A stretch of 64,000 bases of DNA from Macrostomum lignano (Eukaryota). A program made the position numbers and the translations under genes. Location of the stretch: NCBI GenBank assembly GCA_002269645.1, contig NIVC01001901.1, forward strand, positions 1 to 64,000, read 5' to 3'. Below the pieces are notes generated by a model that saw nothing but the letters and a program-made list of their open reading frames with translations, had not been told where the DNA came from and did not search any database. Every line of letters begins with the position of its first letter. Position 1 is the stretch's first letter. This document shows positions 1 through 36,220 of this stretch, in pieces.

Positions 1-326
1 TTTTTGGCCCGTTCAATAGCTTCTTCACGTACTTTTAGCCATTGAAAATAGAGAGTGAAACGAGGAAGAAGTGACGAGACTGCATATCTGTTTTGTTGAA
101 ATAGACTGGGAAAAGGCTTTTTAAAAAACTATGGAAAGTACGAGCGCGTATTGCTTTGCTTTCAGCCAACAAAAAGTACACAATACTCTCTGTCGGGAGT
201 AGCTCTTTAAAAACTGTTGTGTGCGCCGATGCGCGCTTATATCCAAAGCTTCTTTTTCAGGTTTTTTCGTCAAAGTCTGAGACTTCGACTGAGTTTTGAT
301 AGTTTGGCTTCAAAACGAAAGTAGAA

Positions 327-1472
327 ATGGCCAACTCAGATTTACCAAGTTTCTACTCGTGAGTGACTTTTTTAACACCACTAAGTCTCAGTTGTATTAA
401 TGACGCAATATTAGCCGTAATAATATTCACAATAACAATTTTTTGCCAGCTACTGGGTGTGACGCAAGCTGCTTCCGAGGCGGAAATTCTGAGAGCTTGG
501 CGCAAGCGAATGACGAACTATCATCCCGACAAGGCTGGCAGCGAGGCTGAAGACATGGCCAAGCTTCTGAATCAAGCCAAATCTGTCCTGTGCGATAAAA
601 CCGAACGAATGAAGTACGACGAACGTCGAGATGAAGCAACTGAGGATTACGAGAGTGGCGCTGATTTGCCTCGATTGCCAACTGGAAAGACACTATCGAA
701 GGACCTCATGAGCAGAATCGCTGCTTGGAGGGAGAGTTCCGAGACGGCTCATGGAGCGCAATGCGACCCAAACGGATTCGCAAATAAGTTTTTCGAGGAA
801 ACTCGTCAAGCAGTTCTGGATCTTCAGGAGAAGCTACGGGTTATTAAGAGGACGAGACGGTTAACTCTGCAAAGCCCGGTTTTTATTGAGAGTATCGCGT
901 CAGGCGAGCTTTCAGAAGAACATTTAGACGATGAAGTTCTCACCGAAGCCTGCAAATGGGCGAGAGAGACGCTAGAAAAAACGCTGAAAAGGAATACGCA
1001 GACGAAAGTTCCACCAGTTCAAGAAGGCGAACTAGTATGCTGCTATGACCTTTCCAGCTTGAAGGAAAGCGAATTGAGAAAACTCATGGTGATATTGATT
1101 CCTCCATCTGGCTCCAAGCCACTGTCAAGCGACCCCGAAAAGATGCGCCAAAGACTCAAAGATGTGTTACCCAAGTTTCGCGTCGACGTTAATAGAGAGA
1201 GAAGGGGTATAAAGAAGTTTTTCCTCGGTGCTCGTTGTGTGGTATGCAGTGCCGAGAAAGATTTATCCGAACGAAAATGCTTCCTTGTCGCAGGAGCCTG
1301 TCACGAGTTCAGACCTGTGTGTCTCACATGCTCTAAGCTTGAGTCCAAGAAGACTGCAGTTGTGGGAGGAGTTGGCAGCGACGCCTCAGACAGGATTTGT
1401 AGCTTCCTACGTGGCGACAGGAATTGCAAGTATCGAAAGAATGATGCACAATCTGAAGATAAATCAGCCTAA
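327..1472 (+). CDS. 5' part of a large multidomain gene: DnaJ (J-domain) followed by a degenerate FYVE-like Cys-rich zinc finger
   Basis: ORF 363-1472 contains LLGVTQAASEAEILRAWRKRMTNYHPDKAG...LLNQAKSVLCDKTERMKYD (HPD at 522-530). The probable start exon is ATG327 (MANSDLPSFYS), followed by an AT-rich intron GTGAGT 359...CCAG 449; the phase is off by 1 nt. The C-terminus reads CVVC...C-H...CLTCS...RIC. Confidence 0.8.
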
Positions 1473-4400
1473 GTCTGTGGTCGAAGCAACATTCGATCCT
1501 TCAATCGCTCTCACTACAAAACTTTTTCTTGCTGCTTCGGCGCTGTGGCTAGCTCTACAGAAGTCTCAACGCAATGAGCATGACATTGAGTCACTGCAGA
1601 GCCGTCAAACTGAGCTCGTACTGGAAATTTCAGAAGAAAAAGATCCTGACCAAGAGCTGCGCTTGCTGTTACTCTTGGTAGAAAATGAAGAGTCTGCCTT
1701 GGAAAGTAATGAAAATTTTCGATCTTTTTTAACACAAGAAGAAGCCCGGCTAAAGCTGATAGTTGACTCGGCCGATCTGAACAACTCGATTCACATTGCG
1801 TTCTCACAGTCACCGAGAGACAGGTTGCTGCTACGCCAGGCTAGCAAGTCAGCTAAGCTGGCTGACGAAGCACTTGCTAAAGCGAAACTTGAGTCAAGAA
1901 TTGTAGGTCTATTTCTGAGAGGTGCAGGGATCCTCAGCTGTTCAGGTGATGTAACAGCTCAACTCAGAGGTATGAAGGACCTCACACAAGCAGTGCTCGA
2001 AGGATACTCTGTCTTCTACCACTCAGATTTGATATCATCTGTAATGCGTATTGTCTCTAGATTCGGAGCTCTTTGTGGGACATTTCCGGTTCATGCGCTG
2101 TTCCATTTAATCGATAACCCATGGTCAGACTGCCAGGGAATGTTCAGTCGTCGGACTGCTTCGTCGGAAACACCAGCCAAAGCACAAGTCCCACTATTCC
2201 CAGGTATTTACGTACCGGGACACAGCGTGCAAGCGTTGAAGAAGAGCGAGATCGCTATCTCCAGAAGACTCGAAAAGGGCCAAATGACGCCACTGCAAGC
2301 GGCAATGAGCGCACTGGACCTTGCCATGGCTTGCGAAACGCTTGCTGAGGTCCTCGCCTGTTTTCTTGAGTGTGTAGCTCTGCTTCTACGAGCTCTGGAA
2401 ATAGAGGAGTCGCTCTACCAGAGATATGCGCTCAAAGAAGCCATGTTTGAAATCGGGATCGCTTCAGTGAGCATTTGTCTCAACAACTTTTCCGATTCAG
2501 CTTTGTTAAACTATTTATTACGCTATGCCTTTTGCTTGCTGAGAGATGCCGCTACGAAAGTTGGACGACCAGATGATGTTGAACGGCTCATTTCGATTCT
2601 AGAGATAGTAGCCTTCACTGGTCGTTTCTCACCATTTGTGTCGCTGCCTCTGGTTCGTCCGTCTGAGTCGCTGGTATTTTCAAATGTGCTCAAAAAGTGC
2701 GCAGGTCAGCTTCTCTGTGGTTTGTCTCAGCCAGAAAATTCCTATTTTCTTGAACTACCGAAGAGTATCATAGCTTACCAGAGCTTGGAATACAGCATCA
2801 GCAGCTCTGCATTCACTGAAAGTGAGACACGCCAGCTTGAGCTCTTAACTGCACGTGAGATGCTTAGAGAGCAGAATCTGGACTTTAACAACGTAGCCGC
2901 CCTGATAAATCCATGCTATCTTGACGTTCCAGAGGACGGTTGGCTTGTACCAAATCAGACACTTGATTTTTCAGGATGCGGAAACACGTATTTGAGCATT
3001 GACAAGGTCATTTTTAACAAAAATACGTTTCAAATTTCTGTCGTGGGCAGCAAAGGGAATCTTGTCAGCGATTTCGATGTGCTGACTGGTCTGCTAATGG
3101 ATCATCCGGGTGTGGCTTTTAGCCTTGACAAGCCCGCCAATCTTCACGAAGCTCGATTCCACCCGTTTCAAAAGTACTGGAGTAGCCAACCAGATCTGCT
3201 TAAAGGAACTCCACTCCTAGACACTCTTTTCAACACGGACTACATCATGAAGCAATTCAGTTCCGGATTAGAGATCTGCAGGAAGCCACCGTTCGATCGG
3301 AGACCATTGCTTAACGGTAGGGGTCTGTTCGCTGGACTGCCAGATCAGCTGCGCTGGCTGTTGAGACCTCTAAGCGAAAGAGGTGGGCAAAGATCTCGCT
3401 GCAGCAGATTCTGGATTGCAGCCACAGACATGGAGATGAAAGTGGAGGAAACACCTGACACGATTGAGTTCGTGTTTGGAAAGGTTCGCTTGGAAGTCAA
3501 AACGCACAGGATGGTAGCTTCAATGGGTGGCGAACACCAGGACGCTGAGACTGATGATGAAGATTCTCCAGAGAATCAGTTCGCAAAGGACATGACGGAG
3601 GCCCTTCCCAGCTTGGGTAGATTCTTTCCCGAGTTTGAAAGACTAAAAGAGCTAACAAAGATTCCGAAACTCTGCCTGATTATTAAGGCCATGCACCAAA
3701 GCCTCGGAGCAATGACCGTTCGCCAGGAGCAAGTAGAGCAAATTCTTGATCACGAACGAGCTGTTAGAATGGAAAAGAGTTATGAGATGGCGAAAAATGT
3801 TCTAGAGACACTGGATCGAGCTGAATCAATCCCTGGTGCAAGCCACTATGATTGTTGCAATCTGGCCACTGATCAATTGCTAAGCCAACTAAACTTAAAT
3901 AAGACCGAGACTGTCCGTGCCTTGCGTAGGCGAGATGTCAGAACGCTCCAGTACCTGTTGGCTGACAGTCTGCCATCAAGCTCTGCTGCGGATGTTAGGC
4001 AACAAATTCAAGATTTGATTGACTCGAAGAGAAGAGAATTTAGGAACTGGAACAGCAAGATACAGCATAAGTTAAATAGTAGCTTGCATCAGAGGCAACA
4101 GAAGATATCCGATTGTGATTGGGCACCCGCAGTGCTGAGCGCTAGTTCGGACGCAACAACACGATCGACAGTATACGGCGGTGTCTTACTGAATCCCAAA
4201 TCAGTGCATTCCAGTTTTCGTATGGAGTTTCCCCCGGGAAGCACCGTTCACAAGGTAGTATCATTTCTGATTCTCGGCGAACTGAATAGCAAGCAGTTCG
4301 CCTCCACGCGGACTTTTGACAGTTTAGATTTAGGGACTGTAAACGAACTTCTTGGGAATAATTTTCCCGAAATGGAGAGTTCCTCTGACTCAGAGCTGGG

Positions 4401-4689
4401 CGGACGTTCAGGCCGTGACAATGAAGGCGCTACCAGCTCTGCTGACAACCAACCCAGAACATCTAAAAACGACCAGTTTTTGAATGATGAAGGAAACTGG
4501 TCTCACATCTTTTCTGACAAGCCCGGCCATGTGGTTCCACGAAACGCAAAAGAAGAATGGGAGCTGCGAAAAAAACTTGTCAGTATTCGAGATCTGGCTC
4601 TCAAAAAAGATCCGAGGTGCATTGACGCTTCTCAGCAATTTGTGCACGTCGAGGGACGAAAAAATAATTGTCGATTTATCTTCTACAAG
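1400..4689 (+). CDS. Long intronless continuation of the same gene (helical region, DUF1598-like region, acidic/Ser linker, start of a toxin-like module)
   Basis: The frame is open from 1213 to 4710 (ORF 1228-4710) with protein-like composition. Motifs: FSLDKP..HPFQ..TPLLDTLFNTDYIMKQFSSG, SRFWI, FAKDMTEALPSLGRFFPEFERLKEL. It ends at a phase-0 donor AAG|GTAAGA at 4690. Confidence 0.75.
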
Positions 4690-4791
4690 GTAAGAAAAGA
4701 TGCCATTTAAGTTTTAAAAATGATTGACTTTAAAGATTATGAAAAAGAAAATTTTAATGCATCTATATTTTTTAACAATGGTAATTTCAAG

Positions 4792-5085
4792 GACGAGAGG
4801 GAGACAAGTAGCGACGTACTGCACCTAGCCTGGTGGATAAGAATCGATGGAAACGGGCGCATCGTCGGAGCAGGCTGCAACACGGTCCTAGCCAAGGAGC
4901 GAATTCCACAGTTGTTTCTGTTCTTGCGACCCATACCAACTGGCGAAGCTTTGATGGCATTTTTTCTGAGGGAGAAGCATAAGCTTCATGGCAAGAAAAC
5001 AGACGTGGAGTTTCATGATCACCTAAGCACCATTCGGAAAGGTCTGATTAATCAAATTAATTTAGTTAATCAGATCAAACCATAA
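4792..5085 (+). CDS. Terminal exon of the J-domain/DUF1598-like gene
   Basis: AT-rich 102-nt intron 4690-4791 (GTAAGA...TTTCAAG), phase 0 on both sides, joining FYK to DERETSSDVLHLAWWIRIDGNGRIVGAGCN...QIKP-stop. Confidence 0.7.
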   Translation, partial: DERETSSDVLHLAWWIRIDGNGRIVGAGCNTVLAKERIPQLFLFLRPIPTGEALMAFFLREKHKLHGKKTDVEFHDHLSTIRKGLINQINLVNQIKP

Positions 5086-5546
5086 AGATACTAGAAACCG
5101 TAGATGGGCGTCTCGCCTATTTCGGGATTAAACTACTTTCAAATAGGCATCTGTTTGGAGTTTTTTGGATATATTTGTGAACCAAATTAAATTAATTTTT
5201 TTGCTGATTGTTATTTAATATTAGGATTCAACACTTGGTTTTGAGTGCTTAAATGTCTATGGCACTCGTGACCAAATATCATCGCTTTTGACGATCGGAA
5301 TGGGAATTTGGGCAGTCGGAACGGGACGCCATAGACATTCAAGCCAGGCCACAGATCTCACCCTAGTCATGGACTTAAGCAGTTTAGCAAAGTCTACTGA
5401 GGGAGGCTAGGCCATAGGCTATAAATTTGAACATTCAGTGTGGGAAAAAGCCATTCAAATTAAACGGGAATCGGACTGAGATTTTACAGCTCTCTGTCCC
5501 TCTCTCCCCTGTTTGTTCGTCTTTGGCCTGAAAGCGACCCCATTGA

Positions 5547-5870
5547 ATGGCGCCACCAATTCCTGTAGCAGATCGCCAGCGGCTGATTGATGCGATTGAA
5601 CAAGGGTCATCCATCGCAGGAAGCTGCAAGAATCTTGTAAATCAAGAAAAAAACGGCATTCCGAATCGCTGCCAACTTTTGACTTGATGGCAAAGTGGAA
5701 TCCCTTCCTCGCGGTGGTCGTAAATAAGGATTGTGCAAGGCCGATCAGGAAATGAGAGAATTCTTGGTTGAGAAACTCGATGAAAATCCTTTCCTGACGC
5801 TCAAGGAAATGTCTGAACTGCTGACTGAGCGCTTTCCCAAGAAGCCGCATGTTCACCTTGTTCTTCACTT
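5547..5870 (+). pseudogene. Truncated IS630/Tc1-type transposase N-terminal HTH region with stop codons
   Basis: Manual translation: MAPPIPVADRQRLIDAIEQG...KTAFRIAANF*LDGKVESLPRGGRK*...EMREFLVEKLDENPFLTLKEMSELLTERFP. PRGG and ENP.LTLKE are typical of IS630/Tc1 DNA-binding regions. No DDE domain follows. Confidence 0.65.
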
Positions 5871-5947
5871 TTAAATATTCCAGTGGCCCTGAGATATAAA
5901 AATACATTAAATTAGGCGAATTCCCGTTTTCAATGGCTTTTTTCCCA

Positions 5948-6503
5948 TTTTGATTGTCAATTCCACATGCTATGGTTGTGTATTCCCAAGCAGCCCGAGC
6001 CTGTGGCCTGGCTTGAATTGAATGTCTATGACGTCCCGTTTTGATTGTCAATTCCACATGCTATGGTTGTGTATTCCCAAGCAGCCCGAGCCTGTGGCCT
6101 GGCTTGAATTGAATGTCTATGGCGTCCCGTTTTGATTGTCAATTCCACATGCTATGGTTGTGTATTCCCAAGCAGCCCGAGCCTGTGGCCTGGCTTGAAT
6201 TGAATGTCTATGGCGTCCCGTTTTGATTGTCAATTCCACATGCTATGGTTGTGTATTCCCAAGCAGCCCGAGCCTGTGGCCTGGCTTGAATTGAATGTCT
6301 ATGGCGTCCCGTTTTGATTGTCAATTCCACATGCTATGGTTGTGTATTCCCAAGCAGCCCGAGCCTGTGGCCTGGCTTGAATTGAATGTCTATGGCGTCC
6401 CGTTTTGATTGTCAATTCCACATGCTATGGTTGTGTATTCCCAAGCAGCCCGAGCCTGTGGCCTGGCTTGAATTGAATGTCTATGGCGTCCCGTTTTGAT
6501 TGT
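5948..6503. repeat. 91-bp tandem repeat, about 6 near-identical copies, inside the transposon right end
   Basis: TGATTGTC recurs at 5951, 6042, 6133, 6224, 6315, 6406 and 6497. Confidence 0.95.
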
Positions 6504-6890
6504 CCAAATTCCCATTTAGATTGTCAAAAGCGGTATTGCAATCAGGATATATATTTCTATTGCATTAAGTAAATAATAAACGTCGTTTAATTCACATTCC
6601 GAAGGACATTCTAACCATAGACTATGATGAATTAAACAGCGTTTATCATATATGAACTTCGATTGATCCTGATTTCGAGGAGGATTATATGATATACCGG
6701 TATTAAACCACTTTAAAGCTCACTTTCAGGGAGGTTATTGACATAGATTTATTTTGCGCGATTTAATCGATCACTTTCCCGGACATTTTGCAAGGATTAT
6801 TCTATGTATCTAAATAAGCGAGCTTCTGCCTTCTCTTCCTTCGTGACTCAAGAAATTTCTTAATGAAATTTTGTCTATGGTAAGAATGTG

Positions 6891-7140
6891 GGGGCTTTGC
6901 CCCCACATCCCCAGCAGGGGCTTTGCCCCCACATCCCCAGCAGGGGCTTCGCCCCACATCCCCAGCAGGGGCTTCGCCCCCACATCCCCAGCAGGGGCTT
7001 CGCCCCACATCCCCAGCAGGGGCTTCGCCCCCACATCCCCAGCAGGGGCTTCGCCCCCACATCCCCAGCAGGGGCTTTGCCCCCACATCCCCAGCAGGGG
7101 CTTCGCCCCCACATCCCCAGCAGGGGCTTCGCCCCCACAC
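6891..7140. repeat. 25-26 bp GC-rich minisatellite GGGGCTT(C/T)GCCCCCACATCCCCAGCA, about 10 copies
   Basis: Seen directly; each unit contains a GGGGC-TTC-GCCCC palindrome. Confidence 0.95.
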
Positions 7141-8330
7141 CCCATTCCCAACTTCAACCATAGACATACAAGTATGGCTCCGGGATTTATCTGAATACAT
7201 CGGCTTCGGCTCTCGGGATTTAATCACATACCGACCTCAAACCCATAGAATATCTCATACATATCCTAGTTTTTGTCAAAATTACCATAGACAACACATT
7301 CCCGGCTCAGAATAGTACAATTTTTAACGATAAAATGAGCAATCGTATTTTATATGACTAGCCAATATGCGATCACGAGCCATTTAAGCATGCTTTTTGT
7401 GTTTAATGCACGCTTTTACACATTTATATCCTGTTACAATAAGCACCTATTGGAAATGATTCAAAGTTCTGTGGGGTTGGCTACATTCCAAGGGTGTCAC
7501 GCACATTTCATCTGTATATTTGATGGAATGCAGTTTACGACGTATGAAAGTATTTTTTCTCTAATAATAAGAATACACATACGAGCATATAGAGGGCAAC
7601 TAGCAAGTGGAAAAGCATTGTCGTTTGACCAAATAGTGCAACAATGAGTTTAACCATGCAGGAATGCTTTAGTCTCACTTGAAAATAAACTACCGTAAAC
7701 TCTACCGACAATGCTATACTATGTTTCTAGCATCAATGGGTCAAACAAATCAAATTTGAACTAAAAAACAATTGCTTTTTTCAGAATTCAACATTGTATC
7801 GGAACGAGCAAATTCGGAGAGGCAGTACACTGCCGGAGCTCGACTCTCGGCGGCTGCCATTGCTGCTGCGGTGGAGGAAGGTCCGGAAGGATACGTTTTT
7901 GTAGAGTAGCTGTCTGGCTGCCTTTTAAGCTCCTTTACACTCAAGTGCAATCCCATTTCTGTGCGGATTTTTCGGATTTGCTTCCACTAAAATAGACATC
8001 ACTTTTTTGTCTGTTAGCCGGGGCTCTAGTAGATTCCCTGTCATAGACTTGGTTGAGTATATAAATTTAGGACAACTTAGAGATCAAACTATTAGTTTTG
8101 AAGAAACATTTTTGCAATTTGGGAACTTTTTGTAACTTCCGGGATCCCGATGCGCATGATTGGTAACTTGTCAACGGCAATTTTTTTCATTTTTTATAGT
8201 TTTATGTGAAATAATTGCATATCCAATTTGTATTTGATTTTCATTGTTAGTATTATACTTAGAGATTTAGCATATTTAGATAACTACTAAATAAGATATG
8301 TATTGGTATTGCTTTTGATTCTTACAATCA

Positions 8331-8970
8331 TGAGTGAGTGAGTGAGTGAGTGAGTGAGTGAGTGAGTGAGTGAGTGAGTGAGTGAGTGAGTGAGTGAGTG
8401 AGTGAGTGAATGAGTGAGTGAGTGAATGAGCGAGTGAGTGAGTGAGTGAGTGAGTGAGTGAGTGAGTGAGTGAATGAGTGAATGAGTGTGTGAGTGAGTG
8501 AGTGAGTGAGTGAGTGAGTGAGTGAATGAGTGAGTGAGTGAGTGAGTGAGTGAGTGAGTGAGTGAGTGAGTGAATGAGTGAGTGAGTGAGTGAGTGAGTG
8601 AGTGAGTGAGTGAGTGAGTGAGTGAGTGAGTGAGTGAGTGAGTGAGTGAGTGAGTGAGTGAGTGAGTGAGTGAGTGAGTGAGTGAGTGAGTGAGTGAGTG
8701 AGTGAGTGAGTGTGTGAGTGAGTGAGTGAGTGAGTGAGTGAGTGAGTGAGTGAGTGTGTGAGTGAGTGAGTGAGTGAGTGAGTGTGTGAGTGAGTGAGTG
8801 AGTGAGTGAGTGAGTGAGTGAGTGAGTGAGTGAGTGAGTGAGTGAGTGAGTGAGTGAGTGAGTGAGTGAGTGAGTGAGTGAGTGAGTGAGTGGGTGAGTG
8901 AGTGAGTGAGTGAGTGAGTGAGTGAGTGGGTGAGTGAGTGGGTGAGTGAGTGAGTGGGTGAGTGAGTGAG
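8331..8970. repeat. (GAGT)n microsatellite
   Basis: Seen directly. Confidence 0.98.
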
Positions 8971-9568
8971 AGTTTTGTGCTGGTTGTTACTGTTTTGCTA
9001 CAATGATTGATGACTGCAATAAAGGAAAGTTCTCTGAATCATGCGGCAGAAGAAAAATGAATCATGAGTATTTTTATCGTTCATATTTTTTCTTTTTTCA
9101 TCTGTTAGCCCATCCCGGTATTGAGGAACCTCCGGTATTTGGGACCCCTACGCAGAGCTAACTTTAACAATCTTTTTTAATCTTAACCTTGAAATCAAAA
9201 ACTGGTTTTCTGCAATCAACTTATAAAATATAGATCAAATCATTTCAACTGTACTCTCCATTTTAGATAGAATTTTTTCTATGCTGTCCTGACCTTTTTT
9301 AATTTGTCAGAGAATATACTGACCAGCATAATTTTTTCTGCCATGATTACTTCTAAGTAGGGTGATACGAAATCACATGGCAAACCTTGTTTCCATATTT
9401 TCCCATTTTGCTAAACACAAATCACCCACATCACAAGCGCTTACGACGGAATAAAGCCATTATGAGGCAATTTGAAACTTTGAGGAAGAATACAACCGTG
9501 GATACTTCTGAGGTAGATTCTCCCATTCTGATTCTCCCATTCTGTGTGTTCCCGAATTGCAAAAAGTC

Positions 9569-10397
9569 ACCTGTCTGTGGCTTCATTCACCTGTCTGTGG
9601 CTTCATTCATCTGTCTGTGGCTTCAATTATCTGTCTGTGGCTTCATTCATCTGCCTGTGGCTTCATTCATCTGTCCTGTGGCTTCATTCATCTGTCTGTG
9701 GCTTCATTCATCTGCCTGTGGCTTCATTCATCTGTCCTGTGGCTTCATTCATCTGTCTGTGGCTTCACTCACCTGTCTGTGGCTTCAATTATCTGTCTGT
9801 GGCTTCATTCATCTGCCTGTGGCTTCATTCATCTGTCCTGTGGCTTCATTCATCCGTCAGTGGCTTCATTCATCTGTCAGTGGCTTCATTCATCTGCCTG
9901 TGGCTTCATTCATCTGTCTGTCTGTGGCTTCATTCACCTGTCTGTGGCTTCATTCATCTGTCCTGTGGCTTCATTCATCTGTCAGTGGCTTTATTCATCT
10001 GTCTGTGGCTTCATTCATCTGCCTGTGGCTTCATTCATCCGTCAGTGGCTTCATTCATCTGTCTGTGGCTTCACTCACCTGTCTGTGGCTTCGTTTATCT
10101 GTCTGTGGCTTCACTCACCTGTCTGTGGCTTCATTCATCTTTCTGTGGCTTCATTCATCCGTCAGTGGCTTCATTCATCTGTCAGTGGCTTCATTCATCT
10201 GTCAGTGGCTTCATTCATCTGTCAGTGGCTTCATTCATCTGTCTGTCTGTGGCTTCAATTATCTGTCTGTGGCTTCATTCATCTGTCTGTCTGTGGCTTC
10301 AATTATCTGTCTGCGGCTTTATTCATCTGTCTGTCTGTGGCTTCAATTATCTGTCTGCGGCTTCATTCATCTGTCTGTTTGTGTCTTCATTTATCTG
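9569..10397. repeat. Variable 19-24 bp minisatellite, core CTGTGGCTTCATTCATCTGT
   Basis: Seen directly; it produces three overlapping repetitive pseudo-ORFs. Confidence 0.95.
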
Positions 10398-14323: not shown

Positions 14324-15145
14324 GTTGTTGTTGTTTCACCCACGCCATACAATATATCCGAGTATAGTCTGTGCAATAAGTAGCGTCAATCAATGCAGAC
14401 AGGATTCTCTAGTCTGGCTCCCATAAATTACGGCAGCAGTAGCATCCTAATATTAACACAGTCTGAGGCATACTATACTGATCGTGAGTATAGACTCAAG
14501 AATTGATTCCAGGATTAGAGGACAGAAAGGATGTGAGAGGAGGATGTAGATGATTAAAGTAAGGAGAGTTCAGGTCAGGCCAAGGTAATGTTAGGCACTC
14601 AGACAGAATTGTAATCGATGATGGCGCCCGTGTCCCGTAAAGGAAGCTGTGTTTTGACTGTCTCCTCACGTAAAACTCCTCTCTCCTCTCGCCAGTTTGC
14701 ATAGCGGGCTTTAATGTCTGGCCTGCATGTCCTCACGTGACCCCAGGCTAAGCCGGCGTTGGCGAGACCGAGGCCGGGGTGGGGGAAGAGGCTGCAGCCC
14801 AGACCCGCATCTCCCATTCTACACTTCTACACTTTATAGCAATAGAAAACATTACCAATTCCCATATTAGGAACATTATTTAGAGAGAGGGGAAGAGAGG
14901 AACCATCAGGCTTAGGGGGAGTGCACTTCGGGACTGGGATATCGCCTCCTATGCATAATACAGCCTGCATAGTATAGGAAGTTGAATCTAATTTAGCCAG
15001 ACTCTGGTCCTCAGAGAAATCTCTTAACCTCTATGAACAGGGGGAATAGATAGATCTTCTCACAGTGTATATTCACTGATTGCAGATCTGCTTATCCATA
15101 AGATATAATAAGTCATATATTTAATCTGTAATTTAACGGACTGAT

Positions 15146-18100
15146 GTAGAGAGTAGACTGAGATGTAGACTGAAGTAGAGAGTAGACTGAGATGTAGACT
15201 GAAGTAGAGAGTAGACTGAGATGTAGACTGAAGTAGAGAGTCAAGTGAGGTGTAGACAGAAGTAGAGACTAGAGTGAGATGTAGACTGAAGTAGAGAGTA
15301 AAGTGAGGTGTAGACAGAAGTAGAGACTAGAGTGAGATGTAGACTGAAGTAGAGAGTAAAGTGAGGTGTAGACAGAAGTAGAGAGTAAAGTGAGGTGTAG
15401 ACAGAAGTAGAGACTAGAGTGAGATGTAGACTGAAGTAGAGAGTAAAGTGAGGTGTAGACAGAAGTAGAGAGTAAAGTGAGGTGTAGACAGAAGTAGAGA
15501 GTCAAGTGAGGTGTAGACAGAAGTAGAGACTAGAGTGAGATGTAGACAGAAGTAGAGAGTAAAGTGAGGTGTAGACAGAAGTAGAGAGTAAAGTGAGGTG
15601 TAGACAGAAGTAGAGACTAGAGTGAGATGTAGACTGAAGTAGAGAGTAAAGTGAGGTGTAGACAGAAGTAGAGAGTAAAGTGAGGTGTAGACAGAAGTAG
15701 AGAGTAAAGTGAGGTGTAGACAGAAGTAGAGACTAGAGTGAGATGTAGACTGAAGTAGAGAGTAAAGTGAGGTGTAGACAGAAGTAGAGACTAGAGTGAG
15801 GTGTAGACAGAAGTAGAGAGTAAAGTGAGGTGTAGACAGAAGTAGAGAGTAAAGTGAGGTGTAGACAGAAGTAGAGAGTAAAGTGAGGTGTAGACAGAAG
15901 TAGAGACTAGAGTGAGATGTAGACTGAAGTAGAGAGTAAAGTGAGGTGTAGACAGAAGTAGAGAGTAAAGTGAGGTGTAGACAGAAGTAGAGAGTAAAGT
16001 GAGGTGTAGACAGAAGTAGAGAGTAAAGTGAGGTGTAGACAGAAGTAGAGACTAGAGTGAGATGTAGACAGAAGTAGAGAGTCAAGTGAGGTGTAGACAG
16101 AAATAGAGAGTAAAGTGAGGTGTAGACAGAAGTAGAGAGTAAAGTGAGGTGTAGACAGAAGTAGAGAGTAAAGTGAGGTGTAGACAGAAGTAGAGACTAG
16201 AGTGAGGTGTAGACAGAAGTAGAGAGTAAAGTGAGGTGTAGACAGAAGTAGAGAGTAAAGTGAGGTGTAGACAGAAATAGAGAGTAAAGTGAGGTGTAGA
16301 CAGAAGTAGAGAGTAAAGTGAGGTGTAGACTGAAGTAGAGAGTAAAGTGAGGTGTAGACAGAAGTAGAGAGTAAAGTGAGGTGTAGACAGAAATAGAGAG
16401 TAAAGTGAGGTGTAGACAGAAGTAGAGAGTAAAGTGAGGTGTAGACAGAAGTAGAGAGTAAAGTGAGGTGTAGACAGAAGTAGAGAGTAAAGTGAGGTGT
16501 AGACAGAAGTAGAGAGTAAAGTGAGGTGTAGACAGAAGTAGAGAGTAAAGTGAGGTGTAGACAGAAGTAGAGAGTAAAGTGAGGTGTAGACAGAAGTAGA
16601 GAGTAAAGTGAGGTGTAGACAGAAGTAGAGAGTAAAGTGAGGTGTAGACAGAAGTAGAGAGTAAAGTGAGGTGTAGACAGAAGTAGAGAGTAAAGTGAGG
16701 TGTAGACAGAAATAGAGAGTAAAGTGAGGTGTAGACAGAAATAGAGAGTAAAGTGAGGTGTAGACAGAAGTAGAGAGTAAAGTGAGGTGTAGACAGAAGT
16801 AGAGAGTAAAGTGAGGTGTAGACAGAAGTAGAGAGTAAAGTGAGGTGTAGACAGAAATAGAGAGTAAAGTGAGGTGTAGACAGAAGTAGAGAGTAAAGTG
16901 AGGTGTAGACAGAAGTAGAGAGTAAAGTGAGGTGTAGACAGAAGTAGAGACTAGAGTGAGATGTAGACTGAAGTAGAGAGTAAAGTGAGGTGTAGACAGA
17001 AGTAGAGAGTAAAGTGAGGTGTAGACAGAAGTAGAGAGTAAAGTGAGGTGTAGACAGAAGTAGAGAGTAAAGTGAGGTGTAGACAGAAGTAGAGAGTAAA
17101 GTGAGGTGTAGACAGAAGTAGAGAGTAAAGTGAGGTGTAGACAGAAGTAGAGAGTAAAGTGAGGTGTAGACAGAAGTAGAGAGTAAAGTGAGGTGTAGAC
17201 AGAAGTAGAGAGTAAAGTGAGGTGTAGACAGAAGTAGAGAGTAAAGTGAGGTGTAGACAGAAGTAGAGAGTAAAGTGAGGTGTAGACAGAAGTAGAGAGT
17301 AAAGTGAGGTGTAGACAGAAGTAGAGAGTAAAGTGAGGTGTAGACAGAAGTAGAGAGTAAAGTGAGGTGTAGACAGAAGTAGAGAGTAAAGTGAGGTGTA
17401 GACAGAAGTAGAGAGTAAAGTGAGGTGTAGACAGAAGTAGAGAGTAAAGTGAGGTGTAGACAGAAATAGAGAGTAAAGTGAGGTGTAGACAGAAGTAGAG
17501 AGTAAGTGAGGTGTAGACAGAAGTAGAGAGTAAAGTGAGGTGTAGACAGAAGTAGAGAGTAAAGTGAGGTGTAGACAGAAGTAGAGAGTAAAGTGAGGTG
17601 TAGACAGAAGTAGAGAGTAAAGTGAGGTGTAGACAGAAGTAGAGAGTAAGTGAGGTGTAGACAGAAGTAGAGAGTAAAGTGAGATGTAGACTGAAGTAGA
17701 GAGTAAAGTGAGGTGTAGACAGAAGTAGAGAGTAAAGTGAGGTGTAGACAGAAGTAGAGAGTAAAGTGAGGTGTAGACAGAAGTAGAGAGTAAAGTGAGG
17801 TGTAGACAGAAGTAGAGAGTAAAGTGAGGTGTAGACAGAAGTAGAGAGTAAAGTGAGGTGTAGACAGAAGTAGAGAGTAAAGTGAGGTGTAGACAGAAGT
17901 AGAGAGTAAAGTGAGGTGTAGACAGAAATAGAGAGTAAAGTGAGGTGTAGACAGAAGTAGAGAGTAAAGTGAGGTGTAGACAGAAGTAGAGAGTAAAGTG
18001 AGGTGTAGACAGAAGTAGAGAGTAAAGTGAGGTGTAGACAGAAGTAGAGAGTAAAGTGAGGTGTAGACAGAAGTAGAGAGTAAAGTGAGGTGTAGACAGA

Positions 18101-21100
18101 AGTAGAGAGTAAAGTGAGGTGTAGACAGAAGTAGAGAGTAAAGTGAGGTGTAGACAGAAGTAGAGAGTAAAGTGAGGTGTAGACAGAAGTAGAGAGTAAA
18201 GTGAGGTGTAGACAGAAGTAGAGAGTAAAGTGAGGTGTAGACAGAAGTAGAGAGTAAAGTGAGGTGTAGACAGAAGTAGAGAGTAAAGTGAGGTGTAGAC
18301 AGAAGTAGAGAGTAAAGTGAGGTGTAGACAGAAGTAGAGAGTAAAGTGAGGTGTAGACAGAAGTAGAGAGTAAAGTGAGGTGTAGACAGAAGTAGAGAGT
18401 AAAGTGAGGTGTAGACAGAAGTAGAGAGTAAAGTGAGGTGTAGACAGAAGTAGAGAGTAAAGTGAGGTGTAGACAGAAGTAGAGAGTAAAGTGAGGTGTA
18501 GACAGAAGTAGAGAGTAAAGTGAGGTGTAGACAGAAGTAGAGAGTAAAGTGAGGTGTAGACAGAAGTAGAGAGTAAAGTGAGGTGTAGACAGAAGTAGAG
18601 AGTAAAGTGAGGTGTAGACAGAAGTAGAGAGTAAAGTGAGGTGTAGACAGAAGTAGAGAGTAAAGTGAGGTGTAGACAGAAGTAGAGAGTAAAGTGAGGT
18701 GTAGACAGAAGTAGAGAGTAAAGTGAGGTGTAGACAGAAGTAGAGAGTAAAGTGAGGTGTAGACAGAAGTAGAGAGTAAAGTGAGGTGTAGACAGAAGTA
18801 GAGAGTAAAGTGAGGTGTAGACAGAAGTAGAGAGTAAAGTGAGGTGTAGACAGAAGTAGAGAGTAAAGTGAGGTGTAGACAGAAGTAGAGAGTAAAGTGA
18901 GGTGTAGACAGAAGTAGAGAGTAAAGTGAGGTGTAGACAGAAGTAGAGAGTAAAGTGAGGTGTAGACAGAAGTAGAGAGTAAAGTGAGGTGTAGACAGAA
19001 GTAGAGAGTAAAGTGAGGTGTAGACAGAAGTAGAGAGTAAAGTGAGGTGTAGACAGAAGTAGAGAGTAAAGTGAGGTGTAGACAGAAGTAGAGAGTAAAG
19101 TGAGGTGTAGACAGAAGTAGAGAGTAAAGTGAGGTGTAGACAGAAGTAGAGAGTAAAGTGAGGTGTAGACAGAAGTAGAGAGTAAAGTGAGGTGTAGACA
19201 GAAGTAGAGAGTAAAGTGAGGTGTAGACAGAAGTAGAGAGTAAAGTGAGGTGTAGACAGAAGTAGAGAGTAAAGTGAGGTGTAGACAGAAGTAGAGAGTA
19301 AAGTGAGGTGTAGACAGAAGTAGAGAGTAAAGTGAGGTGTAGACAGAAGTAGAGAGTAAAGTGAGGTGTAGACAGAAGTAGAGAGTAAAGTGAGGTGTAG
19401 ACAGAAGTAGAGAGTAAAGTGAGGTGTAGACAGAAGTAGAGAGTAAAGTGAGGTGTAGACAGAAGTAGAGAGTAAAGTGAGGTGTAGACAGAAGTAGAGA
19501 GTAAAGTGAGGTGTAGACAGAAGTAGAGAGTAAAGTGAGGTGTAGACAGAAGTAGAGAGTAAAGTGAGGTGTAGACAGAAGTAGAGAGTAAAGTGAGGTG
19601 TAGACAGAAGTAGAGAGTAAAGTGAGGTGTAGACAGAAGTAGAGAGTAAAGTGAGGTGTAGACAGAAGTAGAGAGTAAAGTGAGGTGTAGACAGAAGTAG
19701 AGAGTAAAGTGAGGTGTAGACAGAAGTAGAGAGTAAAGTGAGGTGTAGACAGAAGTAGAGAGTAAAGTGAGGTGTAGACAGAAGTAGAGAGTAAAGTGAG
19801 GTGTAGACAGAAGTAGAGAGTAAAGTGAGGTGTAGACAGAAGTAGAGAGTAAAGTGAGGTGTAGACAGAAGTAGAGAGTAAAGTGAGGTGTAGACAGAAG
19901 TAGAGAGTAAAGTGAGGTGTAGACAGAAGTAGAGAGTAAAGTGAGGTGTAGACAGAAGTAGAGAGTAAAGTGAGGTGTAGACAGAAGTAGAGAGTAAAGT
20001 GAGGTGTAGACAGAAGTAGAGAGTAAAGTGAGGTGTAGACAGAAGTAGAGAGTAAAGTGAGGTGTAGACAGAAGTAGAGAGTAAAGTGAGGTGTAGACAG
20101 AAGTAGAGAGTAAAGTGAGGTGTAGACAGAAGTAGAGAGTAAAGTGAGGTGTAGACAGAAGTAGAGAGTAAAGTGAGGTGTAGACAGAAGTAGAGAGTAA
20201 AGTGAGGTGTAGACAGAAGTAGAGAGTAAAGTGAGGTGTAGACAGAAGTAGAGAGTAAAGTGAGGTGTAGACAGAAGTAGAGAGTAAAGTGAGGTGTAGA
20301 CAGAAGTAGAGAGTAAAGTGAGGTGTAGACAGAAGTAGAGAGTAAAGTGAGGTGTAGACAGAAGTAGAGAGTAAAGTGAGGTGTAGACAGAAGTAGAGAG
20401 TAAAGTGAGGTGTAGACAGAAGTAGAGAGTAAAGTGAGGTGTAGACAGAAGTAGAGAGTAAAGTGAGGTGTAGACAGAAGTAGAGAGTAAAGTGAGGTGT
20501 AGACAGAAGTAGAGAGTAAAGTGAGGTGTAGACAGAAGTAGAGAGTAAAGTGAGGTGTAGACAGAAGTAGAGAGTAAAGTGAGGTGTAGACAGAAGTAGA
20601 GAGTAAAGTGAGGTGTAGACAGAAGTAGAGAGTAAAGTGAGGTGTAGACAGAAGTAGAGAGTAAAGTGAGGTGTAGACAGAAGTAGAGAGTAAAGTGAGG
20701 TGTAGACAGAAGTAGAGAGTAAAGTGAGGTGTAGACAGAAGTAGAGAGTAAAGTGAGGTGTAGACAGAAGTAGAGAGTAAAGTGAGGTGTAGACAGAAGT
20801 AGAGAGTAAAGTGAGGTGTAGACAGAAGTAGAGAGTAAAGTGAGGTGTAGACAGAAGTAGAGAGTAAAGTGAGGTGTAGACAGAAGTAGAGAGTAAAGTG
20901 AGGTGTAGACAGAAGTAGAGAGTAAAGTGAGGTGTAGACAGAAGTAGAGAGTAAAGTGAGGTGTAGACAGAAGTAGAGAGTAAAGTGAGGTGTAGACAGA
21001 AGTAGAGAGTAAAGTGAGGTGTAGACAGAAGTAGAGAGTAAAGTGAGGTGTAGACAGAAGTAGAGAGTAAAGTGAGGTGTAGACAGAAGTAGAGAGTAAA

Positions 21101-24100
21101 GTGAGGTGTAGACAGAAGTAGAGAGTAAAGTGAGGTGTAGACAGAAGTAGAGAGTAAAGTGAGGTGTAGACAGAAGTAGAGAGTAAAGTGAGGTGTAGAC
21201 AGAAGTAGAGAGTAAAGTGAGGTGTAGACAGAAGTAGAGAGTAAAGTGAGGTGTAGACAGAAGTAGAGAGTAAAGTGAGGTGTAGACAGAAGTAGAGAGT
21301 AAAGTGAGGTGTAGACAGAAGTAGAGAGTAAAGTGAGGTGTAGACAGAAGTAGAGAGTAAAGTGAGGTGTAGACAGAAGTAGAGAGTAAAGTGAGGTGTA
21401 GACAGAAGTAGAGAGTAAAGTGAGGTGTAGACAGAAGTAGAGAGTAAAGTGAGGTGTAGACAGAAGTAGAGAGTAAAGTGAGGTGTAGACAGAAGTAGAG
21501 AGTAAAGTGAGGTGTAGACAGAAGTAGAGAGTAAAGTGAGGTGTAGACAGAAGTAGAGAGTAAAGTGAGGTGTAGACAGAAGTAGAGAGTAAAGTGAGGT
21601 GTAGACAGAAGTAGAGAGTAAAGTGAGGTGTAGACAGAAGTAGAGAGTAAAGTGAGGTGTAGACAGAAGTAGAGAGTAAAGTGAGGTGTAGACAGAAGTA
21701 GAGAGTAAAGTGAGGTGTAGACAGAAGTAGAGAGTAAAGTGAGGTGTAGACAGAAGTAGAGAGTAAAGTGAGGTGTAGACAGAAGTAGAGAGTAAAGTGA
21801 GGTGTAGACAGAAGTAGAGAGTAAAGTGAGGTGTAGACAGAAGTAGAGAGTAAAGTGAGGTGTAGACAGAAGTAGAGAGTAAAGTGAGGTGTAGACAGAA
21901 GTAGAGAGTAAAGTGAGGTGTAGACAGAAGTAGAGAGTAAAGTGAGGTGTAGACAGAAGTAGAGAGTAAAGTGAGGTGTAGACAGAAGTAGAGAGTAAAG
22001 TGAGGTGTAGACAGAAGTAGAGAGTAAAGTGAGGTGTAGACAGAAGTAGAGAGTAAAGTGAGGTGTAGACAGAAGTAGAGAGTAAAGTGAGGTGTAGACA
22101 GAAGTAGAGAGTAAAGTGAGGTGTAGACAGAAGTAGAGAGTAAAGTGAGGTGTAGACAGAAGTAGAGAGTAAAGTGAGGTGTAGACAGAAGTAGAGAGTA
22201 AAGTGAGGTGTAGACAGAAGTAGAGAGTAAAGTGAGGTGTAGACAGAAGTAGAGAGTAAAGTGAGGTGTAGACAGAAGTAGAGAGTAAAGTGAGGTGTAG
22301 ACAGAAGTAGAGAGTAAAGTGAGGTGTAGACAGAAGTAGAGAGTAAAGTGAGGTGTAGACAGAAGTAGAGAGTAAAGTGAGGTGTAGACAGAAGTAGAGA
22401 GTAAAGTGAGGTGTAGACAGAAGTAGAGAGTAAAGTGAGGTGTAGACAGAAGTAGAGAGTAAAGTGAGGTGTAGACAGAAGTAGAGAGTAAAGTGAGGTG
22501 TAGACAGAAGTAGAGAGTAAAGTGAGGTGTAGACAGAAGTAGAGAGTAAAGTGAGGTGTAGACAGAAGTAGAGAGTAAAGTGAGGTGTAGACAGAAGTAG
22601 AGAGTAAAGTGAGGTGTAGACAGAAGTAGAGAGTAAAGTGAGGTGTAGACAGAAGTAGAGAGTAAAGTGAGGTGTAGACAGAAGTAGAGAGTAAAGTGAG
22701 GTGTAGACAGAAGTAGAGAGTAAAGTGAGGTGTAGACAGAAGTAGAGAGTAAAGTGAGGTGTAGACAGAAGTAGAGAGTAAAGTGAGGTGTAGACAGAAG
22801 TAGAGAGTAAAGTGAGGTGTAGACAGAAGTAGAGAGTAAAGTGAGGTGTAGACAGAAGTAGAGAGTAAAGTGAGGTGTAGACAGAAGTAGAGAGTAAAGT
22901 GAGGTGTAGACAGAAGTAGAGAGTAAAGTGAGGTGTAGACAGAAGTAGAGAGTAAAGTGAGGTGTAGACAGAAGTAGAGAGTAAAGTGAGGTGTAGACAG
23001 AAGTAGAGAGTAAAGTGAGGTGTAGACAGAAGTAGAGAGTAAAGTGAGGTGTAGACAGAAGTAGAGAGTAAAGTGAGGTGTAGACAGAAGTAGAGAGTAA
23101 AGTGAGGTGTAGACAGAAGTAGAGAGTAAAGTGAGGTGTAGACAGAAGTAGAGAGTAAAGTGAGGTGTAGACAGAAGTAGAGAGTAAAGTGAGGTGTAGA
23201 CAGAAGTAGAGAGTAAAGTGAGGTGTAGACAGAAGTAGAGAGTAAAGTGAGGTGTAGACAGAAGTAGAGAGTAAAGTGAGGTGTAGACAGAAGTAGAGAG
23301 TAAAGTGAGGTGTAGACAGAAGTAGAGAGTAAAGTGAGGTGTAGACAGAAGTAGAGAGTAAAGTGAGGTGTAGACAGAAGTAGAGAGTAAAGTGAGGTGT
23401 AGACAGAAGTAGAGAGTAAAGTGAGGTGTAGACAGAAGTAGAGAGTAAAGTGAGGTGTAGACAGAAGTAGAGAGTAAAGTGAGGTGTAGACAGAAGTAGA
23501 GAGTAAAGTGAGGTGTAGACAGAAGTAGAGAGTAAAGTGAGGTGTAGACAGAAGTAGAGAGTAAAGTGAGGTGTAGACAGAAGTAGAGAGTAAAGTGAGG
23601 TGTAGACAGAAGTAGAGAGTAAAGTGAGGTGTAGACAGAAGTAGAGAGTAAAGTGAGGTGTAGACAGAAGTAGAGAGTAAAGTGAGGTGTAGACAGAAGT
23701 AGAGAGTAAAGTGAGGTGTAGACAGAAGTAGAGAGTAAAGTGAGGTGTAGACAGAAGTAGAGAGTAAAGTGAGGTGTAGACAGAAGTAGAGAGTAAAGTG
23801 AGGTGTAGACAGAAGTAGAGAGTAAAGTGAGGTGTAGACAGAAGTAGAGAGTAAAGTGAGGTGTAGACAGAAGTAGAGAGTAAAGTGAGGTGTAGACAGA
23901 AGTAGAGAGTAAAGTGAGGTGTAGACAGAAGTAGAGAGTAAAGTGAGGTGTAGACAGAAGTAGAGAGTAAAGTGAGGTGTAGACAGAAGTAGAGAGTAAA
24001 GTGAGGTGTAGACAGAAGTAGAGAGTAAAGTGAGGTGTAGACAGAAGTAGAGAGTAAAGTGAGGTGTAGACAGAAGTAGAGAGTAAAGTGAGGTGTAGAC

Positions 24101-25956
24101 AGAAGTAGAGAGTAAAGTGAGGTGTAGACAGAAGTAGAGAGTAAAGTGAGGTGTAGACAGAAGTAGAGAGTAAAGTGAGGTGTAGACAGAAGTAGAGAGT
24201 AAAGTGAGGTGTAGACAGAAGTAGAGAGTAAAGTGAGGTGTAGACAGAAGTAGAGAGTAAAGTGAGGTGTAGACAGAAGTAGAGAGTAAAGTGAGGTGTA
24301 GACAGAAGTAGAGAGTAAAGTGAGGTGTAGACAGAAGTAGAGAGTAAAGTGAGGTGTAGACAGAAGTAGAGAGTAAAGTGAGGTGTAGACAGAAGTAGAG
24401 AGTAAAGTGAGGTGTAGACAGAAGTAGAGAGTAAAGTGAGGTGTAGACAGAAGTAGAGAGTAAAGTGAGGTGTAGACAGAAGTAGAGAGTAAAGTGAGGT
24501 GTAGACAGAAGTAGAGAGTAAAGTGAGGTGTAGACAGAAGTAGAGAGTAAAGTGAGGTGTAGACAGAAGTAGAGAGTAAAGTGAGGTGTAGACAGAAGTA
24601 GAGAGTAAAGTGAGGTGTAGACAGAAGTAGAGAGTAAAGTGAGGTGTAGACAGAAGTAGAGAGTAAAGTGAGGTGTAGACAGAAGTAGAGAGTAAAGTGA
24701 GGTGTAGACAGAAGTAGAGAGTAAAGTGAGGTGTAGACAGAAGTAGAGAGTAAAGTGAGGTGTAGACAGAAGTAGAGAGTAAAGTGAGGTGTAGACAGAA
24801 GTAGAGAGTAAAGTGAGGTGTAGACAGAAGTAGAGAGTAAAGTGAGGTGTAGACAGAAGTAGAGAGTAAAGTGAGGTGTAGACAGAAGTAGAGAGTAAAG
24901 TGAGGTGTAGACAGAAGTAGAGAGTAAAGTGAGGTGTAGACAGAAGTAGAGAGTAAAGTGAGGTGTAGACAGAAGTAGAGAGTAAAGTGAGGTGTAGACA
25001 GAAGTAGAGAGTAAAGTGAGGTGTAGACAGAAGTAGAGAGTAAAGTGAGGTGTAGACAGAAGTAGAGAGTAAAGTGAGGTGTAGACAGAAGTAGAGAGTA
25101 AAGTGAGGTGTAGACAGAAGTAGAGAGTAAAGTGAGGTGTAGACAGAAGTAGAGAGTAAAGTGAGGTGTAGACAGAAGTAGAGAGTAAAGTGAGGTGTAG
25201 ACAGAAGTAGAGAGTAAAGTGAGGTGTAGACAGAAGTAGAGAGTAAAGTGAGGTGTAGACAGAAGTAGAGAGTAAAGTGAGGTGTAGACAGAAGTAGAGA
25301 GTAAAGTGAGGTGTAGACAGAAGTAGAGAGTAAAGTGAGGTGTAGACAGAAGTAGAGAGTAAAGTGAGGTGTAGACAGAAGTAGAGAGTAAAGTGAGGTG
25401 TAGACAGAAGTAGAGAGTAAAGTGAGGTGTAGACAGAAGTAGAGAGTAAAGTGAGGTGTAGACAGAAGTAGAGAGTAAAGTGAGGTGTAGACAGAAGTAG
25501 AGAGTAAAGTGAGGTGTAGACAGAAGTAGAGAGTAAAGTGAGGTGTAGACAGAAGTAGAGAGTAAAGTGAGGTGTAGACAGAAGTAGAGAGTAAAGTGAG
25601 GTGTAGACAGAAGTAGAGAGTAAAGTGAGGTGTAGACAGAAGTAGAGAGTAAAGTGAGGTGTAGACAGAAGTAGAGAGTAAAGTGAGGTGTAGACAGAAG
25701 TAGAGAGTAAAGTGAGGTGTAGACAGAAGTAGAGAGTAAAGTGAGGTGTAGACAGAAGTAGAGAGTAAAGTGAGGTGTAGACAGAAGTAGAGAGTAAAGT
25801 GAGGTGTAGACAGAAGTAGAGAGTAAAGTGAGGTGTAGACAGAAGTAGAGAGTAAAGTGAGGTGTAGACAGAAGTAGAGAGTAAAGTGAGGTGTAGACAG
25901 AAGTAGAGAGTAAAGTGAGGTGTAGACAGAAGTAGAGAGTAAAGTGAGGTGTAGAC
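15146..25956. repeat. 29-bp satellite GTAGAGAGTAAAGTGAGGTGTAGACAGAA, about 370 copies (10.8 kb)
   Basis: Seen directly. Variant monomers occur in the left part; the array is essentially invariant from about 18000 to the right edge. Confidence 0.98.
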
Positions 25957-27961: not shown

Positions 27962-29279
<1,318 letters not shown>

Positions 29280-36046: not shown

Positions 36047-36220
36047 GCAGTTTCTAGCTGAAAGTCGTCGAAAGAAAAATTATGCTAATAACTATCTGAA
36101 ATATTAATTCGTCGAAAAATTTAAATAAAGTTTTCCCATCTACTTACTAGCAGTAGGTACTTTCGAGGAAAAAGCTCCTGCTGCGCATTATTGGGCAGAA
36201 CTATAATCAAGAGCCACCCA

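Follow-up and report, generated by a model that had tools for sequence, protein, structure and literature searches.

Closest Described Systems

Carriers that end in a swappable toxin are well known from bacteria and from a few eukaryotic effector classes. In the polymorphic toxins of bacteria, the N-terminal and central parts form a conserved carrier, and the C-terminal toxins that follow it vary and are exchanged (PMC3482391). The gene considered here occupies positions 327-7909 on the (+) strand of a 64,000-nucleotide stretch of DNA from the flatworm Macrostomum lignano (contig NIVC01001901.1, positions 1 to 64,000; the window in what follows), and it belongs to a family of large proteins with a J domain at the N-terminus, a long conserved scaffold and a C-terminal module that changes from member to member. 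The reference is a second-copy locus (L001, contig NIVC01000575.1) together with its annotated protein (P0001). An earlier note, made from the letters of the window, had drawn attention to the segment 327-5085 as a candidate effector gene with a comparable carrier-plus-tip logic. The comparison of relatives slightly favors a reading in which the invariant part would act as carrier or regulator and the C-terminal module as an active, often cytotoxic payload, the family as a whole taking part in biological conflict.

The likeness to bacterial polymorphic toxins is literal in one case, the Ntox17 domain being common to both, and tips resembling TNT-type NADases and GIY-YIG nucleases occur in the family too. 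However, the family is headed by a J domain, to which a FYVE finger may or may not be joined, and not by a secretion or trafficking domain of the type II to type VII secretion systems (T2SS-T7SS); RHS or filamentous repeats are lacking, and the core is absent from Pfam and from the PDB. Most family members are, moreover, eukaryotic and have no signal peptide. Crinkler/RHS-type (CR) effectors, which reportedly combine a constant N-terminal header with swappable C-terminal toxin or enzyme domains and are said to be common to free-living eukaryotes and Legionella-like bacteria, also differ in their header. In the present family it consists of a J domain plus a FYVE finger, followed by a conserved scaffold of ~1000 amino acids (aa), and no Crinkler-type header is found among the Pfam matches of P0001 or of 27 relatives. 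Legionella and Coxiella have eukaryote-like effectors, for which Dot/Icm is the secretion system in question, and the bacterial members of the family come only from Legionellales, Coxiellaceae and a related gammaproteobacterium.

A different kind of likeness links the flatworm protein to DNAJC13/RME-8, a large J-domain protein that recruits Hsp70, binds endosomes in a manner dependent on phosphatidylinositol 3-phosphate (PI3P) and contains long helical repeats (PMC11702692). However, the sequence relationship between the two is limited to the J domain. In RME-8 this domain is internal, PI3P is bound via a PH-like domain, and there is no variable enzymatic C-terminus. Full-text literature searches found no description of the present family. 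Its logic is that of bacterial polymorphic toxins and of Crinkler/RHS-type effectors; what sets the family apart is the head of J domain plus FYVE finger and the long conserved scaffold, whose core has no relative in Pfam or the PDB.

Distribution and Common Plan of the Family

An exhaustive HMMER search with aa 313-1425 of the protein as query returned 422 cluster representatives at E<=1e-3, of which 269 also pass E<=1e-10 and 84 pass E<=1e-30, with values down to 5.6e-100 outside M. lignano. The nearest relative, P0003, shares 37% identity in the core. Eukaryotic members include Hydra vulgaris LOC136079363 and proteins of the chlorarachniophyte Chlorarachnion reptans (Rhizaria) and the amoebozoan Clastostelium recurvatum, and a Tara Oceans scaffold provides a metagenomic one. 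Bacterial members are present in a metagenome-assembled genome of Legionellales, in Tatlockia, in two Coxiellaceae and in an uncultured gammaproteobacterium, and a J-domain protein of the giant virus Tupanvirus soda lake was found with Foldseek. Two pattern sets run against IMG/VR viral contigs found no relatives. These comparisons establish a large, patchy and unnamed family, spread over eukaryotes (flatworm, Hydra, Amoebozoa, Rhizaria, marine metagenomes), Legionellales/Coxiellaceae and Tupanvirus, or, in broader terms, over animals, amoebae, algae-like protists, amoeba-associated bacteria and a giant virus. The bacterial link suspected from the window is borne out by the Legionellales/Coxiellaceae homologues and extends to the giant virus.

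As established from the alignments, the common plan runs from J domain and FYVE finger through helical repeats, core, coiled coil and a small beta module to a low-complexity linker and a variable C-terminal module. Of 27 relatives scanned with Pfam, which had been chosen for an N-terminal HPD, 26 match DnaJ and 13 match FYVE, the latter with a best E of 1.7e-17. The fingers of relatives can be aligned with one another, and several, e.g., those of P0042, P0073 and P0088, include the basic RRHHCR motif. The domain order, which the earlier note did not recognize from any named gene, is conserved, in that relatives possess DnaJ, a true FYVE finger and the core. Members seemingly devoid of a J domain probably have one on an upstream exon or in a shifted frame. 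Bacterial members consist of J domain and core with no finger, and the FYVE finger is found in eukaryotic members only.

The Legionellales gene is named "polymorphic toxin type 17 domain-containing protein." Its neighbors are ordinary bacterial genes (argS, folB, hemE), and it adjoins a gene with a Coxiella CBUA0006_C domain. Further members stand on large contigs, where sparse and fragmented calls of open reading frames (ORFs) look eukaryotic, and many of the eukaryotic ones are single uninterrupted ORFs of 1300-1700 codons. This layout would suit a recently acquired or selfish element, either an effector transferred from Legionellales or a giant virus or a toxin-antidote selfish gene that does not serve its host. 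Such an element would also fit the one very large exon of the flatworm gene, set in a genome that averages ~5 introns per gene, the occurrence of the family in bacteria that live inside cells and in an amoeba-infecting giant virus, and the frequency of toxin-type tips. However, three GT-AG introns interrupt the flatworm gene, its G+C content equals that of its surroundings, and neither transposon ends nor an antidote gene were seen there, no systematic search for either having been made. Furthermore, the eukaryote-type FYVE finger is restricted to eukaryotic members, and transfer from eukaryotes to bacteria therefore fits at least as well as the reverse. A recent acquisition or selfish element is thus considered very unlikely.

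Two loci of relatives show features of their own. In L010, the core ORF of P0005 (1336 aa) is closely preceded by a separate DnaJ ORF of 125 aa (582-959). The gammaproteobacterial homologue in L008 (3986-7542) is split into the ORFs 3986-5326 and 5335-7542, after which comes an ORF with the helix-turn-helix of an insertion sequence-type transposase (7589-7852); it may be a decaying copy beside an insertion sequence.

Exchange of the C-Terminal Module

The beta module, with the family motifs CxWVPAA and YGGV, is the last element conserved across the family ahead of the variable end, and past it no family-wide alignment is possible. The tips form mutually unrelated clusters of 27, 17, 9, 8, 7, and 6 members plus many singletons. 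The largest cluster, of 27 members, matches the GIY-YIG nucleases (Pfam E 1.7e-9), P0042 ends in an Alpha_kinase domain (Pfam E 3e-24), and the last 107 residues of the Legionellales protein P0080 match Ntox17 (E 1.3e-20), a known polymorphic-toxin domain (PMC3482391). The 9-member cluster displays TNT-type motifs, matches Pfam TNT in 3/7 (best E 0.0034) and has the NADase effector Tne2 as its top PDB match (E 0.045), so that its assignment as a TNT-like NADase is weak but concordant. For the clusters of 17, 8, and 7, Pfam gave nothing at E<=1 except a single PBECR4 match (E 0.017); the 7-member cluster is HNH-like by eye only. Gly/Ser-rich linkers precede many of the tips, as in the flatworm.

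Unrelated tips are found on cores that are 62-72% identical, and the sharing of tips declines steadily with core divergence. On these alignments, modules are therefore exchanged on a conserved carrier. The homologues do not form a single-copy housekeeping gene with an invariant C-terminus, and the carrier-plus-tip logic proposed for the locus holds for the family; it does not extend to a recognizable toxin in the flatworm, whose own tip matches none.

Architecture of the Flatworm Protein

The main part of the J domain is encoded at 450-620 (+), and its identity, as read earlier from the HPD tripeptide, is certain. Pfam PF00226 is matched with E 4.4e-14 in the window and 5.8e-15 in P0001, HPD itself lies at nucleotides (nt) 522-530 (aa 36-38), and ~50 J domains in the PDB are matched (best E 1e-7). 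The protein begins with this domain, and no hydrophobic leader resembling a signal peptide is visible by eye.

The Cys-rich finger (CVVC-x13-C-x6-CH-x6-CLTC, aa 274-305) is encoded at 1236-1331 (+). As in relatives, it comes after the J domain and before the helical region, and it aligns within the FYVE column block of these proteins, its first and last CxxC pairs coinciding with C1-C2 and C7-C8 of their fingers. A FYVE domain has eight zinc-binding Cys in four CxxC-type pairs, of which the flatworm sequence offers only CVVC, C, CH, and CLTC. The alignment indicates that this is a decayed FYVE finger, which is FYVE-like by descent. The name given to it earlier is thus right in this sense.

The finger is followed by a region of alpha-helical repeats (1351-2904, +; P0001 aa 313-830), the second half of which is conserved in the family; HMMER matches begin at about query residue 280. 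Two AlphaFold models were built with 65-66 homologues and reach a predicted template modeling score (pTM) of 0.71 and 0.64. They display helical repeats, an alpha/beta domain with long hairpins, long helices and a small sheet. In model mf48d60657b31, residues 1-520 are all helices, and the predicted local distance difference test (pLDDT) is 85-97 from residue 290.

The conserved alpha/beta core of ~260 aa (2905-3684, +; P0001 aa 831-1090) was delimited with HMMER and AlphaFold and is modeled with pLDDT >90. Its motifs are GW, FSLD, HPFQ, TDYxxK (TDYLLK in the flatworm), PPF..R, RFWI (HRFWI), G.L.D, SPE..FA, and FPEF.RL.EL.K. The flatworm protein has every one of the 18 invariant core columns of the family (G, D, L, P, T, D, K, P, R, R-W-I, G, D, P, R, L, K). 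The core had been likened to DUF1598 (PF07643), an assignment that Pfam fails to support for the core ORF (E<=1), for 27 relatives (E<=0.001) or for 15 core segments (E<=10). Nor does any other Pfam family match the core ORF at E<=1 or the 15 core segments at E<=10. Scans with NCBIfam and PADLOC returned the J domain as sole match, and a sequence-profile search of the PDB with the core returned none. Foldseek found nothing in the PDB at E<=1e-3 with either model, only helical-repeat noise and short NTF2-like matches (best E 0.08). The sole strong structural match is the "J domain-containing protein" of Tupanvirus soda lake (Foldseek E 1e-25, 500 columns, 23% identity).

Long helices or a coiled coil follow the core at 3685-4113 (+; AlphaFold helices at model residues 740-916), and then comes the small beta module with CDWAPAV and YGGVLL at 4114-4251 (+; strands at model residues 924-967). 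The low-complexity linker that had been read ahead of a small terminal module is confirmed. It comprises 42 aa rich in Ser, Gly, Asp, and Asn (EMESSSDSELGGRSGRDNEGATSSADNQPRTSKNDQFLNDEG; 4369-4494, +), with pLDDT <50. The first part of the tip, NWSHIFSDKPGH ... FIFYK, is encoded at 4495-4689 (+) according to the P0001 alignment. The flatworm tail profile matches 128 relatives and reaches only ~aa 1400. The tip is unlike the tail of the nearest relative, P0003. A word-indexed protein database search with it found nothing, which is weak evidence, as P0001 itself was also missed. The flatworm tip is coding and constrained, and it is its position that suggests a toxin-like nature. A likeness to small RNase toxins (predicted helix plus four strands) was noted and is not relied upon, the pLDDT being <50. 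On the alignments, the flatworm member combines all invariant core residues with a decayed finger and a lineage-specific tip.

A Proposed Role in Biological Conflict

In the mechanism proposed for the family, the J domain would recruit Hsp70, and an intact FYVE finger would direct the protein to endosomes or phagosomes rich in PI3P. The C-terminal module would be the active and often cytotoxic payload, held, regulated or released by the core together with the beta module. In eukaryotes such proteins might act against engulfed or intracellular microbes or viruses, or carry out cell suicide triggered by infection, and in Legionellales they might be effectors directed at the host. As a hypothesis, an immune or conflict role of the family is plausible.

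Several results weigh against this role. Searches of Pfam and the PDB with the flatworm tip (aa 1361-1549) find no match, PADLOC gives no meaningful one, hhalign against every tip cluster of the family gives a probability of 13% at most, and AlphaFold does not model the tip reliably (pLDDT <50). The finger is devoid of the central Cys pairs and of the basic RRHHCR motif that define PI3P-binding FYVE domains, and Pfam finds no FYVE match in aa 197-383 even at E<=10. PI3P binding and membrane targeting, the latter suggested in the earlier note, are therefore doubtful in the flatworm. The window copy as sequenced cannot encode the full protein, since exon 1 is unable to join exon 2 in frame. Relatives looked up as possible paralogues with different tips within one genome fell in different samples. 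Neither an immunity gene nor an antidote was identified as a partner, the search at the flatworm locus having covered its ORF list only, and the 93-aa ORF that begins 17 nt after the Ntox17 tip (L003 9384-9665), in the position of an immunity gene, has no Pfam match. Finally, an autoproteolytic Cys protease built on the Cys of CxWVPAA was considered and rejected. This Cys is present in 94 of the 107 members that bear the motif, and bacterial members have LRVPAVF.

The main rival to a conflict role is that the protein serves endosomes as an ordinary co-chaperone of Hsp70 or as a scaffold, similar to RME-8/DNAJC13. Its conserved part would then carry out the trafficking function, and the C-terminal module would be, at least in the flatworm, a lineage-specific adaptor and no toxin. 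A J domain combined with a PI3P-type finger follows the logic of endosomal Hsc70 recruiters (DNAJC13, PMC11702692), and both the lack of a toxin signature in the flatworm tip and the purifying selection between copies would suit this function. It fits the head of the protein, but not the patchy distribution, with Hydra, a chlorarachniophyte and an amoebozoan as the only named eukaryotes alongside Legionellales and a giant virus, nor the recurrence of nucleases, a NADase-like domain and Ntox17 at one position. In addition, close cores swap their tips, and the hallmarks of FYVE are gone from the finger of the flatworm. An ordinary co-chaperone is accordingly judged unlikely.

If the family does constitute a conflict or immunity system, it would link the deployment of toxins to Hsp70 recruitment and phosphoinositide targeting, provide a new fold for structural study together with several unassigned candidate toxin domains, and illustrate clearly how genes move between organisms associated with amoebae. 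Transgenesis and RNA interference make the animal member directly testable in M. lignano. The boldest version, to be taken as speculative and improbable in its full extent, is a new eukaryotic conflict system. A carrier coupled to Hsp70 and anchored to endosomes or phagosomes would possess a core of new fold for sensing or gating, and its exchangeable toxin (nuclease, NADase, RNase-like or kinase) would kill microbes or execute cell suicide. Legionellales and giant viruses would then have captured copies as weapons or decoys, and the flatworm tip would be a new toxin domain.

Gene Structure and State of the Window Copy

P0001, annotated as "hypothetical protein BOX15_Mlig017921g3" (gene Mlig017921.g3), is 1549 aa long, in agreement with the ~1500 aa reconstructed earlier, and is 97% identical to the window ORF. 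Close matches to the ORF at 1228-4710 are restricted to two database clusters, both from M. lignano (P0001, and P0002 = A0A1I8GVL3). Positions 1-6515 of the window are 98.9% identical to L001, introns and flanks included. The window locus is therefore, on this evidence, another copy or assembly version of Mlig017921.g3, of which several near-identical copies exist. Contamination by a symbiont is excluded by the spliceosomal introns, the repeat-rich eukaryotic flanks and the location of P0001, which neighbors a V-SNARE gene on a contig of 531 kb.

The gene consists of four exons over 327-7909 (+), which were placed by tblastn of P0001 against the window and by direct reading of the splice sites. 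Exon 1 (327-359, ATG at 327) encodes MANSDLPSFYS, the start of the J domain. Intron 1 (360-449), where P0001 joins FYS to LLGV, runs from GTGAGT to TTTTTTGCCAG. Exon 2 (450-4689), the uninterrupted exon of 4.2 kb remarked on earlier, is 4240 nt long and a single reading frame apart from a 2-nt deletion. Intron 2 (4690-4791) is a GT-AG intron of 102 nt that runs from GTAAGA to TTTCAAG; it contains the in-frame TAA at 4708. Exon 3 (4792-5041, phase 1) encodes the second part of the tip, DERETSSDVLHLAWW ... STIRK. Intron 3 (5042-7784) measures 2743 nt, and exon 4 (7785-7909) encodes the end of the tip, EFNIVSERANSERQYTAGARLSAAAIAAAVEEGPEGYVFVE, with the stop codon TAG at 7907-7909. The gene had been thought to end at 5085. 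Its true end is 7909, and the 44 nt at 5042-5085 (GLINQINLVNQIKP and stop), which account for the last 14 residues of the earlier translation, are a read-through into intron 3. The Mlig_3_7 annotation from which P0001 comes was guided by RNA-seq and transcriptome data (PMC5730564). Because of this guidance, the segments belong to one transcript model, as the earlier note had assumed.

Compared with L001, the window copy has two frame-breaking lesions, of which only the second had been recognized as a frameshift. In the first, one G is absent at the exon-1 donor (359/360), TACTCG/TGAGTG replacing the TACTCG/GTGAGTG of L001; the wider donor region reads TACTCGTGAGTG in the window and TACTCGGTGAGTG in L001. 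Because of this single missing G, exon 1 cannot join exon 2 in frame, and when the sole remaining GT donor is used, exons 1 and 2 together give YSYWV and then a stop (worked out by hand). The second is a 2-nt deletion of AG at 1350/1351 (AAGAAG--ACTG vs. AAGAAGAGACTG in L001), a site across which P0001 and P0002 both read KKRLQLWEE. Both deletions sit in short repeats (GG; AGAG) and would be either long-read assembly errors or a very recent inactivation.

Inactivation would make the window gene a young pseudogene in the neopolyploid genome of M. lignano, with only other copies such as L001 being functional. In addition to the two deletions and the premature stop after YSYWV, the extensive duplication documented for this genome (PMC5730564, PMC10733133) is in keeping with this explanation. 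However, deletions in GG and AGAG repeats are typical of long-read assembly errors, the non-coding flanks differ from L001 by single-base indels in both directions, and PacBio assemblies of M. lignano reportedly vary in the number of intact ORFs. The rest of the 4.65 kb coding sequence contains no indel or stop relative to L001, and the proportions of synonymous (pS 0.019) and non-synonymous (pN 0.007) differences give a pN/pS of 0.37; the tip accounts for 5 synonymous changes and 2 non-synonymous ones. P0002, in which window-type variants prevail, is likewise in frame at 1350. A pseudogene is accordingly possible, though somewhat doubtful. It would concern this locus alone and is compatible with either a conflict or a co-chaperone function of the family.

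P0002, which lacks exon 1, is a mosaic of mostly window-type and some L001-type variants, and the 1350 site is in frame in it. At least three versions of the gene have therefore, judging from these variants, been assembled for the species. The differences between the window and L001 are unevenly spread. At 2515-2534 there are 12 substitutions within 20 nt (LLRYAFC vs. VSRHAFA), and at 2722-3867, over 1.15 kb that hold the conserved core, there are zero differences, synonymous ones included. Patchy gene conversion among the duplicated copies is a possible cause of such clustered substitutions followed by an identical stretch.

Repeats Within and Beyond the Gene

Intron 3 contains two tandem arrays, a 91-bp unit repeated six times at 5943-6504, whose copy number is unlike that of L001, and a 26-bp unit repeated ten times at 6891-7144. 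A short ORF from 5548 in the same intron (MAPPIPVADRQRLIDAIEQGSSIAG...) resembles by eye the start of a Tc1/mariner-type transposase remnant. Downstream of the gene, positions 8331-58069 are unusually dense in arrays of short period, with 31 rows at a Tandem Repeats Finder (TRF) score >=200. They include (TGAG)n at 8331-8970, a 20-mer repeated 40 times at 9567-10378, (ACTA)n at 27962-29269 and, at 36217-37718, two 16-mers next to each other. A satellite of 10.8 kb (15139-25956) is made up of a 29-bp unit, GACAGAAGTAGAGAGTAAAGTGAGGTGTA, repeated ~373 times with 98% identity. Its strand asymmetry is extreme, with a GC skew of +0.83, and it produces a spurious ORF of 3017 aa on the minus strand.

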